Shown here in pieces: positions 30,401 through 39,400 of a stretch of DNA of 64,000 nucleotides. The DNA is taken from NCBI RefSeq assembly GCF_040938485.1, contig NW_027270918.1:2418001-2482000 (forward strand). The letters are read 5' to 3'. The notes under the pieces were generated by a model, which had not been told where the DNA came from, did not search any database, and saw only the letters and a program-made list of their open reading frames with translations. Source of the stretch: Diadema antillarum. Lineage: Eukaryota. Within the stretch, counting starts at the first letter, position 1; every line of letters starts with the position of its first letter. The position numbers and the translations under genes were made by a program.

Positions 30401-33400
30401 TCTGACTTCCTGATGTCTATGTGAATGTTGTGTATTTCTAAAGCTGCTCTGTAGCACGCCACTGTGGCAAGAAAGAACATGTTTCAGCTATTACAAACTC
30501 TGCATGTCGTGCACGAATAGGTGATGGTATTCAACCATGAATGGAACCCTCGCTTGCAAATTATAGTGGGGGTGGGGGGGGGTGGGGGGGGGGGGGAGGA
30601 CATGACATGAAATCTAACATGGTGACCCAAAAGGTCAACTAATTCTGCTGACGTGCCTTGTATGGAATTTGGTCTGTTGACATTTTGTTTGACTTAAAGT
30701 GTGTAATACAAGAAGTACCATTCCGCTATAAAGATACATTACTGCACTTTGCAGTCTGCCTGTGAAGCCATGAAGAACAGACCCAAGCAATGAAATTTTT
30801 ATCTTTCAGCCATGATGATTATATATCAGAACTTATTGAGGATAATGGTAATGGTAGTGATTACAGAAATATTGACAATGGTAAACTTATGATACTGACA
30901 GTCAGTAATATTTGAATAGATTATGTATTAAAATATTAGTGCCATTGCTCCTACTGGNNNNNNNNNNNNNNNNNNNNNNNNNNNNNNNNNNNNNNNNNNN
31001 NNNNNNNNNNNNNNNNNNNNNNNNNNNNNNNNNNNNNNNNNNNNNNNNNNNNNNNNNNNNNNNNNNNNNNNNNNNNNNNNNNNNNNNNNNNNNNNNNNNN
31101 NNNNNNNNNNNNNNNNNNNNNNNNNNNNNNNNNNNNNNNNNNNNNNNNNNNNNNNNNNNNNNNNNNNNNNNNNNNNNNNNNNNNNNNNNNNNNNNNNACT
31201 ACTATTACCACTACTACTTCTACTACTGCTGCTGTTACTACAGTGTAGTACTACTAATGATATCATTACAGGTACCAGTGCTACTATCACTCATGATCTC
31301 AGTGAAGTAGACACAGTCAGTGAGAGTGAGAGGAATTGAGTTTTCAGTTGAAACTGGCTGAATATGATCGCCAAATCAAGAGCAGTTTTCCTTGAAAGCT
31401 GTGGATTTTGATGGAAAGGTGCATCCATCTTCTGTTGATAGCTCGATACATTCTACTACTTCAGGAGTGTGAATAGCTATAAATAGCCATGATTGCAGCC
31501 ACTGTTGTGGAGTGTGTTGCTAAACATCGAGTTTCGAGTTTCGAGTTTCGAGTTTCGAGTTTCGAGTTTCGAGTTTCGAGTTTCGAGTTTCGAGTTTCGA
31601 GTTTCGAGTATCGAGTATCGAGTATCGAGTTTCGAGTTTCGAGTATCGAGTATCAAGTTTCGAGTTTCGAGTATCGAGTTTCGAGTTTCGAGTATCGAGT
31701 TTCGAGTTTCGAGTTTCGAGTTTCGAGTTTCGAATCTCAAATTCAAATTTCAAGTTGCAGATTTTCGTTAATTGGTAATTGAAAAGCCAGCGATAAATCG
31801 GGAGCCTGTGTCTCCTTCTTTGTCATTGAATACTTCAAGCCTTACAGCAATAGCTTTGGAATCTGCGCTATTTTGTTATTGAATTACACTTTTACTGCAA
31901 TTCCATATCAAATTTGTGTGATTGAGTTACGTAACAAGTGTACTGTGCAACCCTTAGCATTTGCAGCAAAAAAAAAAGAAAAAAAAGAATAGGGCCCATG
32001 TCATTATAACGAGATCATCGGTCCGACTAATTTACTTCATTATGTCGAGACAATTGTATCCTGACACATGGAATACAACCATAATTGTGCATTTATTAAA
32101 ATGCCCTGGTGCAAACTGGTTACATGTATAGACGGATAATATGACGCGATATTGATGAACAGAAAAAGTACATGTGACGGGGAAGTGCTGACCGTAGGGA
32201 ATTTACTCGCGAAAAACAAAGCAAACTGTTATTTTCTAGGCTTGTTATCAAATGTTTTAGATTTGACGATGCCGTAATGATATCGCAGACGGGACCTGCC
32301 TTTCGTTATACGATTACATAGCTGCTATACCTTGACCGCCGCGTAAAGCACCCGACTTTAAAAAGAGAAGGAAAAGAAGAGGATAAAAGAAGATGAAAAA
32401 GAATGGTGAAACAGAGTTGTATCGCTCTAACCCTCCCGAAGCCGGTTGGAAGAATACTCTTTATGTTCGGCAATTTGCTTAAATGTCTTTGGAGTTCAGG
32501 TCTTTGTCAGACATCTTCATTTATTCTGAGTATATTATCATTATATTTATGATCGCCCTGCTCTTCCTGCTGTTATTATTGTCAGCGACAAAGTATTTGC
32601 AATCGAGCAAGAAAGAGGTAATTAATTTTTTCCTCATTGTCGATTCAGGAGATTCAAGCATGGCACAAATTCGAGTTCAAACTTTGTCAGCGAATTGCTG
32701 CTTTCCTAAAATAGCAATGTGACATTTTGTGATTGAATTATAAGTATGTAGCCCTTGTCTGGTGCAACATTAAATAACATGTCATTGTACTGTGTTAAAG
32801 TTTAAATAGTCTAAACTACATTGTGTAGGATTGTGACAAGAGAAAGTGGGCACTAGACCACACATTCCTGAGCACTGTGGTCACTACTGGTCATTCAAGG
32901 ACTCCTTCAAGCACACGCCCTGTGTTCTGACAGGTTCCGAAGTCCAGACTGTGTGGTTGTCATGGCAATGCACATGATATATGTATATACCAACTTCTGG
33001 TAGGAACCTGCGTCATCACCCTTCTCTCTCACTCTCTCTCTCCCTCTCTCTCACCTCCCCCATGCTTTATTCACTCCCGCTCTTGGTTCCAATCTCCCTC
33101 TGTCCCTGTCTCCCCTTATTCTTTTAACCTAGACCACTTTCTCTCCCTACCCCTCTCTATCGACGGATCGTCTTTTCTTAGAATATATAGGGTTATTCAT
33201 TTCATGCGAAATGGTGTCTTCCATCTGATGAAGCAAAGTTATGCAAGTATTAACAGTATGATATTTGAAAGTAATTAGTTTTAGAAAATGTTTCGTGTAT
33301 TATGTGTATGAAAGTGTATTACATTGTGGTAAAACCAACCAAAAAATACGCTTCAACTGAAGACTCCACAAAACCCTCAAACTGCAGAATACCGTCCATC

Positions 33401-36400: not shown

Positions 36401-39400
36401 TGCATAACTTTGCTTCATCAGATGGAAGACACCATTTCGCATGAAATGAATAACCCTATATATTCTAAGAAAAGACGATCCGTCGATAGAGAGGGGTAGG
36501 GAGAGAAAGTGGTCTAGGTTAAAAGAATAAGGGGAGACAGGGACAGAGGGAGATTGGAACCAAGAGCGGGAGTGAATAAAGCATGGGGGAGGTGAGAGAG
36601 AGGGAGAGAGAGAGTGAGAGAGTGAGAGAGAAGGGTGATGACGCAGGTTCCTACCAGAAGTTGGTATATACATATATCATGTGCATTGCCATGACAACCA
36701 CACAGTCTGGACTTCGGAACCTGTCAGAACACAGGCGTGTGCTTGGAGGAGTCCTTGAATGACCAGTAGTGACCACAGTGCTCAGGAATGTGTGGTCTAG
36801 TGCCCACTTTCTCTTGTCACAATGTCCTGATTATCCTACACAATGTGATTATAGTTTAGACTATTTAAAGTTTAACACAGTACAAAGACATGTTATTTAA
36901 TGTTGCACCAGACAAGGGCTACATACTTATAATTCAATCACAAAATGTCACATTGCTATTTTAGGAAAGCAGCAATTCGCTGACAAAGTTTGAACTCGAA
37001 TTTGTGCCATGCTTGAATCTCCTGAATCGACAATGAGGAAAAAAATTAATTACCTCTTTCTTGCTCGATTGCAAATACTTTGTCGCTGACAATAATAACA
37101 GCAGGAAGAGCAGGGCGATCATAAATATAATGATAATATACTCAAAATAAATGAAGCTGTCTGACAAAGACCTGAACTCCAAAGACATTTAAGCAAATTG
37201 CCGAACATAAAGAGTAATCTTCCAACCGGCTTCTGGAGGGTTAGCGCGATACAGCTCTGTTAGTTTCACCATTCTTTTTCATCTTCTTTTATCCTCTTCT
37301 TTTCCTTTTCTTTTTAAAGTCGGGTGCTTTATACGCGGCGGTCAAGTTATAGCAGCTATGTAATCGTATAACGAAAGGCAGGTCCCGTCTGCGATATCAT
37401 TATACGGCATCGTCAAATCTAAAACATTCGATAACAAGCCTAGAAAATAAGAGTTTGCTTTGTTTTTCACGAGTAAATTCCCTACGGTCAGCACTTCCCC
37501 GTCACATGACTGTACTTTTTTCTGTTCATCAATATCGCGTCATATTATCCGTCTATACATGTAACCAGTTTGCACCAGGGCATTTTAATAAATGCACAAT
37601 TGTGGTTGTATTCCATGTGTCATTATACAATTCGTCTGTTGAGAATGAGAAGGGCGTTAAGTTGTCTTGAACACTATGAGTTTTGTGGCAACTTAACGCC
37701 CTTATCATTCTCAACCGAAGCAATTGTCTCGACATAATGAAGTAAATTAGTCGGACCGATGATCTCGTTATAATGACATGGGCCCTATTCTTTTTTCTTT
37801 TTTCTTTTTTGCTGCAAATGTTATGGACTGTACAGTACACTTGTTACGTAACTCAATCACACAAATTTGATATGGAATCGCAGTAAAAGTGTAATTCAAT
37901 AACAAAATAGCGCAGATTCCAAAGCTATTGCTGTAAGGCTTGAAGTATTCAATGACAAAGAAGGAGACACAGGCTCCCGATTTATCGCTGGCTTTCCAAT
38001 TACCAATTAACGAAAATCTGCAACTTGAAATTTGAATTTGAGATTCGAAACTCGAAACTCGAAACTCGAAACTCGATACTCGAAACTCGAAACTCGATAC
38101 TCGAAACTCGAAACTCGATACTCGATACTCGAAACTGGAAACTCGATACTCGAAACTCGAAACTCGATACTCGATACTCGAAACTCGAAACTCGAAACTC
38201 GAAACTCGAAACTCGAAACTCGAAACTCGAAACTCGAAACTCGAAACTCGAAACTCGAAACTCGATGTTTAGCAACACACGTTGTGGATGCATGAATTGT
38301 GACTAATGCACATGTACGATACGTCAAAAGCTGCCACCATTTGTGTTTCCTGGTCTTCACCTACAGTACTGCATAATTTGTATTGTAGGTCTGTACTGAA
38401 AATACAGTGTTCAGAGATCTGTTAGCATTATTGTAAGTGGTAATAAATAATGGCTGGATATCATAATGAACAACTGCCATTGCCAGTGCAAAGCCTGTGC
38501 AATTCCTAGGTAGCCATGTGATTTATGAATAGCTGGGTATGTGATATGATATCAAATACTGTTTTAATGTGCCCTCTTGAAATGTCACGATCTACTCTGT
38601 TGCTGTTAATAGCGTTTAGAGCAACGGTTACATGTCATTATTTGTATCTTGGTTAAACCATGACAAATATTGCAATATATTGGCATGATAAAGTTAACAA
38701 TAAACCAAGATATGCTTATGGTTGAGGGCATATTACTGGAACTAAGGAAAATGTGCAGTTGAAAGTCAACATGATATACATTATTAGATAAAAATGAATG
38801 TTTAAGGGTAATGCTTATGATTTTTTTTTAAAAGATTTGTCAACATTATAGAGGAATTTTATTCATTTTCCCCTTTAAATGAAAGCATTGGATCAAAGTG
38901 AAGAGTTGTTGTAATGTACAGTTTGTCTTAAACCAGCCAAATATCAAGAATGCTATCAATGTCCATTTCAATTTGGGGAAGTTGGTTGATGGAAACCATG
39001 GAAAATAATTCAGTTGAAGTTGCAAGTTTTCAGTTGTTTAGGATTATGATTTTGTTGCAATTTGTTTCCTTTTCTACCCAGGGAGGACAGTGATGCTATT
39101 GAGATGGTGGAGCTGAACTCCAATCGCCCAAATTACCAATCCGGCACCGCCTCCTCTAGGAGCAGGACCGCATCATCCAACAAGAGCACCAGAGTGGTAA
39201 GGAGGAAAAATGTCCATTCCATTTTTGTCTAGCCCACCGGAGGTGTGGGGAGACTAAGGGATCGCCTGCGGCGTCTGTTCATCCGTCGTCCGTCCGTCGT
39301 CCGTCCGTCCGTCCGTCGTCCGTCCGTCCATCGCCTGTCCGTAACGCTACAAAAACTTGAATGACTCTCTACTGAGGATATCAATTTCAATCAAACTTGG

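Follow-up and report, generated by a model that had tools for sequence, protein, structure and literature searches.

Foldback elements have been on record since the 1980s, in sea urchins as TU and in flies as FB. TU combines an outer domain of tandem repeats (unit of ~15 bp) with a unique inner domain in arms of ~0.8 kb; it is modular in build, is flanked by an 8-bp duplication and has no known transposase. The subject of this report is a segment of 6,769 bp at positions 31512-38280 of a 64,000-nt stretch of the Diadema antillarum genome (RefSeq assembly GCF_040938485.1, contig NW_027270918.1, positions 2,418,001 to 2,482,000 of the forward strand). This stretch, to which all coordinates refer, is the window of the analysis. 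We consider it likely that the segment represents a single insertion of a foldback-type, non-autonomous class II transposon, i.e. an element bounded by terminal inverted repeats (TIRs).

Foldbacks in general possess long, internally repetitive TIRs, usually lack open reading frames (ORFs) and have arisen independently in several superfamilies (PMC4079207, PMC3169594, PMC3573991). Tetris of Drosophila virilis has 8-9-bp duplications, TIRs of up to 1,735 bp, ~220-bp repeats and no ORF, and is a source of satellite DNA (PMC4079207). The TU elements of Strongylocentrotus purpuratus (Liebermann et al. 1983, Nature 306:342) are cited in the same paper. In Meloidogyne, the Phantom/MULE element Tm1 is flanked by 9-bp duplications and carries a ~14-bp motif in arrays (PMC3169594). 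Duplications of 7 bp and TIRs reaching 1.26 kb characterise Galileo, of the P superfamily, in which the longest TIRs belong to non-autonomous copies (PMC3573991). Three features of this kind of element are present at the Diadema locus: the TIRs form most of the element, their tandem repeats are unequal in number between the arms (29.6 versus 31.6 units of 7 bp, and one versus nine units of 185 bp), and an exact 8-bp target-site duplication, GTTGTGGA, lies at the termini. An earlier sequence-only reading of this DNA had proposed just such a transposase-less anatomy, with an exact 8-bp duplication, unique 16-bp termini, outer arrays of a 7-bp unit, and inner arms that mirror each other with scattered substitutions and indels, the palindrome accounting for about 78% of the element. 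The termini, arrays, arms and ORF analysis described below bear this anatomy out on every count.

The borders of the element speak for an insertion. The two copies of GTTGTGGA form a direct, not an inverted, repeat, are identical at eight of eight positions and adjoin a perfect inverted pair of 16-bp termini, GTGTGTTGCTAAACAT on the left and its exact reverse complement on the right. The duplication is exactly 8 bp long, because the bases immediately outside and inside the 8-mers differ. A match of eight out of eight at fixed positions is expected by chance once in 65,536 (~1.5e-5), and since chance accounts for the duplication at only this rate we regard the locus as a genuine insertion of a TIR element. 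The terminus begins 5'-GTGTG; a 20-mer that joins it to the first bases of the heptamers matches the 64-kb window at these two places only, even with up to three mismatches (0 expected from shuffles). The flanks are unique, in that the reconstructed empty site, when searched within the window, matches only itself. The left flank is short: a run of 240 N at 30958-31197 ends 306 bp upstream of the left end of the element.

Next to each terminus lies an outer array of a 7-bp unit, TCGAGTT with a TCGAGTA variant (Table 1), the left one decaying until about 31745. The pattern of T and A variants is mirrored between both ends with four mismatches and one 14-bp indel, and no heptamer array occurs elsewhere in the window. 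TCGAGT/ACTCGA, the core of the heptamer, has a density of 120-125 per kb in the outer arrays, of 19.6 per kb in the 185-bp units of the apex, where it occurs four times per hairpin, and of no more than 0.04-0.46 per kb in both the inner arms and the remaining window. In addition, each arm contains one degenerate solo copy of the 185-bp module (80%) at mid-arm, the left one around 32660-32770. On sequence grounds, one module is common to the ends, the mid-arm and the apex of the element.

The arms extend over 31512-34112 (2,601 bp, left) and 35539-38280 (2,742 bp, right), which makes (2601+2742)/6769 or 79% of the element palindromic. A global alignment of the left arm with the reverse-complemented right arm yields 2,595 columns at 98.2% identity, and the arms are separated by 47 substitutions and 15 indels; the extra length of the right arm consists of two additional heptamers, several indels of 1-11 bp and a 93-bp insertion. 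Within the inner arms, 43 of the 2,361 columns carry a substitution (1.8%), transitions and transversions number 29 and 14, and eight substitutions touch CpG, a pattern in keeping with what is expected of ordinary mutation after the arms were last identical. The longest mismatch-free run takes up 790 of the 2,361 inner-arm columns, with no substitution between 32907 and 33697 (broken-stick P = 1.1e-6). It includes 564 nt of gapless, 100% complementary sequence; small indels interrupt it at three places, of which one is a (GA)n run; outside the 790 columns the inner arms differ by about 2.7%. This distribution suggests gene conversion from arm to arm as the simplest explanation, and local constraint may be an alternative cause. 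The one-sided 93-bp insertion has 27-bp inverted ends with one mismatch and CAATT on either side, and could be either a nested insertion resembling a miniature inverted-repeat transposable element (MITE) or a local palindromic duplication; no further copy of it is present in the window.

The divergence of the arms also bears on the fidelity of the assembly. Palindromes and tandem arrays are difficult to assemble and a run of N lies 306 bp upstream. A long read that was chimeric or folded back on itself, or the collapse or wrong joining of a palindrome, might have produced the inverted structure or at least the copy numbers of the arrays. We judge such an artefact to be very improbable: a fold-back read would mirror the flanks, whereas the mirror here stops at perfect termini with a direct duplication and unique flanks, and the arms are set apart by their 47 substitutions, with a mutation-like ratio of transitions to transversions, by the 15 indels and by the 93-bp insertion in one of them. 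The least probable of the alternatives is a local inverted segmental duplication, in other words a host palindrome that never transposed and whose flanking 8-mers match through coincidence. The single copy and the conversion between arms, which is typical of genomic palindromes, speak in its favour; yet it would have to accommodate an eight-out-of-eight direct repeat abutting perfect inverted 16-bp ends (chance of about 1.5e-5), and terminal arrays of short repeats are a signature of foldback transposons (PMC4079207, PMC3169594).

The apex of the element is occupied by units of 185 bp, each of which comprises a 56-nt hairpin and about 129 bp of unique sequence. Folded as single-stranded DNA, the unit hairpin has a free energy (dG) of -23.5 kcal/mol (z -7.6). 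One unit, L1, lies inverted at the inner end of the left arm, and nine, R1 to R9, follow in the orientation of the right arm. R1-R8 are mutually 90-98% identical and R9 is 88-90% identical to them; R9 and L1 share 95% identity, a resemblance which implies that the mirror symmetry runs through L1 and R9. The symmetry centre of the whole element is located at 34086/34087, in the sequence TCTAGA, and coincides with the centre of the first hairpin unit. The sequence-only reading had noted a tandem array at the apex. The array itself was recovered (185 bp, 9.0 units), but it cannot be treated as foreign to the arms, R9 and L1 being mirror images at 95% identity. The further suggestion that the element is an inverted dimer of a half-element joined at a hairpin is compatible with the sequence, because the symmetry centre lies in a hairpin.

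Table 1. Features of the foldback-type element and its borders, with the evidence for each (window coordinates)
Feature	Coordinates	Strand	Evidence
Target-site duplication, left 8-bp copy, GTTGTGGA	31504-31511	.	sequence inspection, exact match
Unique 16-bp terminus, left, GTGTGTTGCTAAACAT	31512-31527	+	pattern match
Outer array, left, 7-bp unit TCGAGTT with TCGAGTA variant, 29.6 copies	31527-31733	+	Tandem Repeats Finder
Inner arm, left, non-repetitive, non-coding	31746-33932	+	inverted-repeat search, arm alignment
Substitution-free tract between arms, left side (partner 35951-36745)	32908-33696	.	arm alignment
Single inverted 185-bp unit L1, inner end of left arm	33933-34112	-	inverted-repeat search, unit comparison
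Apex palindrome, 93 nt, near-perfect hairpin	34040-34132	.	folding, dG -49.2 kcal/mol, z -17.4
185-bp tandem array, 9.0 units (R1-R9), right-arm orientation, 93% matches	34059-35718	+	Tandem Repeats Finder
Sole section lacking a mirror partner ('middle'), ~7.7 of the 185-bp units, 1,426 nt	34113-35538	+	inverted-repeat search
Inner arm, right, mirror of 31746-33932	35719-38044	-	inverted-repeat search, arm alignment
Hairpin insertion, right arm only, 93 bp	37633-37725	.	alignment gap and folding, dG -31.5, z -10.5
Outer array, right, 7-bp unit, 31.6 copies	38045-38265	-	Tandem Repeats Finder
16-bp terminus, right, exact reverse complement of GTGTGTTGCTAAACAT	38265-38280	-	pattern match
Target-site duplication, right 8-bp copy, GTTGTGGA	38281-38288	.	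sequence inspection, exact match

The coding capacity of the element is negligible. The longest ORF measures 101 aa, and the ORFs of 89-117 aa at the ends of the element are the heptamer array in translation. Pfam returned no family above the cut-off for 17 ORFs of at least 45 aa from both arms and the apex, Rfam gave no match in the whole window, and the ORF and Pfam analyses of the element found neither a transposase nor a remnant of one. Short ORFs at 33413-33481 and 32483-32617, both mirrored in the right arm, encode a hydrophobic stretch resembling a signal peptide or a transmembrane segment and end at a GT donor-like site. They may stem from first exons that were captured, or may have arisen by chance in CT-rich DNA; a Pfam search found no homologue or domain for them, and their identity as captured host exons is therefore no longer entertained except as a possibility.

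The composition of the arms leads to an alternative account of the interior. The element might be an ordinary TIR transposon whose true TIR, made up of the 16-bp terminus plus the heptamers, measures only ~235 bp. Its 6.3-kb interior might then be cargo of a Pack-type capture: host DNA, captured or unrelated, which folded back at a hairpin unit and so became palindromic, be it prior to insertion or later. Neither a transposon hallmark nor a homologue is known for the inner arms, and the rest of the window holds no repeat of them; they hold the short ORFs ending at GT donor-like sites, the heptamer module is common to an unrelated element (see below), and the inner and middle segments of the modular TU-type elements are interchangeable, all of which would suit captured DNA. 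Set against this, Pfam identified no host gene fragment in the arms, and the degenerate 185-bp copy and the TCGAGT core link ends, mid-arm and apex, which suggests a single evolving unit. We consider the cargo account unlikely; it is in any case a variant of the foldback explanation and does not contradict it.

The search for relatives of the foldback element was largely negative. The 57 kb of window outside the element contain no second copy, a word-based protein search with a 77-aa arm ORF produced no candidate, and an exhaustive HMMER search of 1.84 billion representatives with a 100-aa arm ORF produced 0 matches. Exact-pattern scans of JGI metagenome contigs, one with the terminus plus heptamers and one with the hairpin core, gave 0 matches each. 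The heptamer-array ORF, used as a protein query, has 139 matches, mostly to unrelated simple repeats such as those of Desulfonema, and the peptides expected from the terminus or from the inner boundary of the array occur in none of the 120 matches listed. As a separate observation on how such repeats are represented, the window also contains an intact-looking ORF of a long interspersed nuclear element (LINE) at 14912-18298 (+), 1,128 aa in length with endonuclease and reverse-transcriptase domains. Its best public relative is only 58% identical, and it follows that the repeats of this genome are poorly represented in public protein sets; the genome as a whole seems to be missing from the protein collection searched. 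A host exon compared with the ESM Atlas yielded nothing above noise.

Two large ENA contigs (ERZ25067556), recovered with the heptamer-array ORF, bear arrays of the same heptamers, CGAGTTT/CGAGTAT. In L002 the arrays sit in a different foldback-like element of 1,497 bp (L002:9943-11439), with termini starting CAGTACCGGTCAAATG and TA on either side, and from L001:9131 onward there is likewise a TA-flanked element bearing heptamers. The TA flanks and the CAGTACCGGTCAAATG termini make up a Tc1/mariner-like signature. The contigs had been considered as a source of further copies of the Diadema element and were rejected on account of the TA flanks and the different termini. The orientation of the heptamer relative to the end is the same in the ENA element and the window element, while termini and duplication differ, and the array is either a shared module or the product of convergent evolution. 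One extension of the former would be that the heptamer array with its TCGAGT core is a portable end module which can stand next to termini with an 8-bp duplication as well as next to TA-flanked, Tc1/mariner-like CAGT termini. This we hold to be unlikely. If it were true and the arrays were homologous, subterminal arrays would be exchanged between unrelated superfamilies of DNA transposons, or an array-specific DNA-binding protein would drive the foldback architecture. Together with the satellite of hairpin units at the apex, it would also point to an undescribed foldback lineage and to a concrete route from transposon hairpin to satellite.

How could the foldback element have come about? The whole element would have been cut and pasted by a DDE-type transposase that was supplied in trans and made 8-bp staggered cuts in the target. 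The 16-bp terminus would serve as the cleavage site, and the heptamer arrays with their TCGAGT core as reiterated putative binding sites of the transposase. A comparable arrangement is seen in hAT subterminal regions and in the outer domains of FB, TU and Tm1. The palindrome probably formed by fold-back or template switching at a 56-nt hairpin, either in gap repair after excision or in replication; with such an origin, the symmetry centre of the element would be expected to fall on a hairpin centre, as it does. Unequal exchange may afterwards have led to the present state of one unit in one arm and nine in the other. The arms would then have gained ~1.8% substitutions, small indels and the nested 93-bp hairpin insertion, and a tract of ~790 bp would have been re-homogenised by arm-to-arm gene conversion.

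Several points weigh against a mobile foldback element of this description. There is one copy only, and mobility is deduced from the duplication and the architecture. Neither the window nor the public collections searched yielded a second copy, an empty site or an autonomous partner. The N run upstream limits the confidence that can be placed in the left flank, and the left junction and the unit counts are provisional. The role of the heptamers as binding sites is putative; since they are also present in an unrelated TA-flanked element, they may belong to a satellite module of a generic sort instead of being recognised by one family only.

Ectopic recombination and inversions are among the effects of foldback elements, which also give rise to satellite DNA and can yield hairpin RNAs. 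The kind has been familiar since TU and FB and the present element opens no new question. Its value lies in being an unusually clean copy, in which arms of 2.6 kb, an exact duplication, a centre of symmetry that lies within a hairpin unit and a recognisable conversion tract come together; a family in this genome could be annotated with it as the reference, and it could help in studying the formation and stability of such palindromes. Elsewhere in the window, a GC-richer stretch harbours long ORFs rich in Ser, Lys and Arg at 44055-45825 and 50674-51300 (+) which match no Pfam family; a disordered host protein with large exons is their probable source.

A duplication of 8 bp is compatible with several superfamilies: hAT, P, Merlin, Zisupton/Novosib and part of the MULE/Phantom elements. 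The hAT elements Ac/Ds combine an 8-bp duplication with subterminal regions of ~200-250 bp that are packed with a short transposase-binding motif, AAACGG in Ac. This motif may be compared with AAACTCG in the Diadema element, which thus shares the duplication length with hAT. However, hAT elements have short TIRs that start 5'-YARNG and no arms on the kilobase scale, whereas the element starts 5'-GTGTG. Merlin has 8-9-bp duplications and a conserved terminal 5'-GG (PMC8101967); here the length of the duplication fits and the terminus, 5'-GT, does not. The terminus 5'-GTGTG therefore contradicts the consensus of both hAT and Merlin. Among MULE/Phantom foldbacks such as FB and Tm1 the duplication is 9 bp with a range of 8-10, which places the 8 bp found here at the edge of the range, and 8 bp is compatible with the P superfamily (7-8 bp), in which autonomous copies encode a THAP-P transposase; no transposase of either group is present in the element.

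Among the individual foldbacks, FB of Drosophila and Tm1 resemble the element in their composite TIRs of variable length built from short reiterated motifs, in being mostly non-autonomous, and in the unequal numbers of repeats between arms. They differ in their 9-bp duplications, against 8 bp here, and in having autonomous copies that encode a FLYWCH-MULE transposase, whereas none is seen in the Diadema element. Galileo likewise has foldback-like, long and internally repetitive TIRs, whose length shifts through the expansion of tandem repeats and the recruitment of internal sequence; unlike the Diadema element it has a 7-bp duplication, TIRs of at most 1.26 kb and a known P-type transposase. 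Tetris is similar in its 8-9-bp duplications, the lack of ORFs, the very long TIRs and the tandem-repeat domain, and illustrates how an array borne on an element can seed satellite DNA while few structurally complete copies exist. In contrast to the Diadema element, it is an insect element, it has no short-unit array directly at its end, its repeat unit is without a hairpin, and its arrays lie within each TIR, whereas the 185-bp array is concentrated at the apex.

With TU, the element shares the 8-bp duplication, the arm design of outer short repeats and unique inner sequence, and the modular build. The TU repeat unit is ~15 bp long and its arms are ~0.8 kb, compared with 7 bp and 2.6-2.7 kb here. 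Moreover, the middle of the Diadema element is a satellite of hairpin-bearing 185-bp units that is continuous with the arms, and in this it is unlike TU. The 7-bp unit argues against membership of the TU family. Overall, the 7-bp unit, the arms of 2.6-2.7 kb and the apex satellite of hairpin units are differences at the level of the family and represent no new principle.

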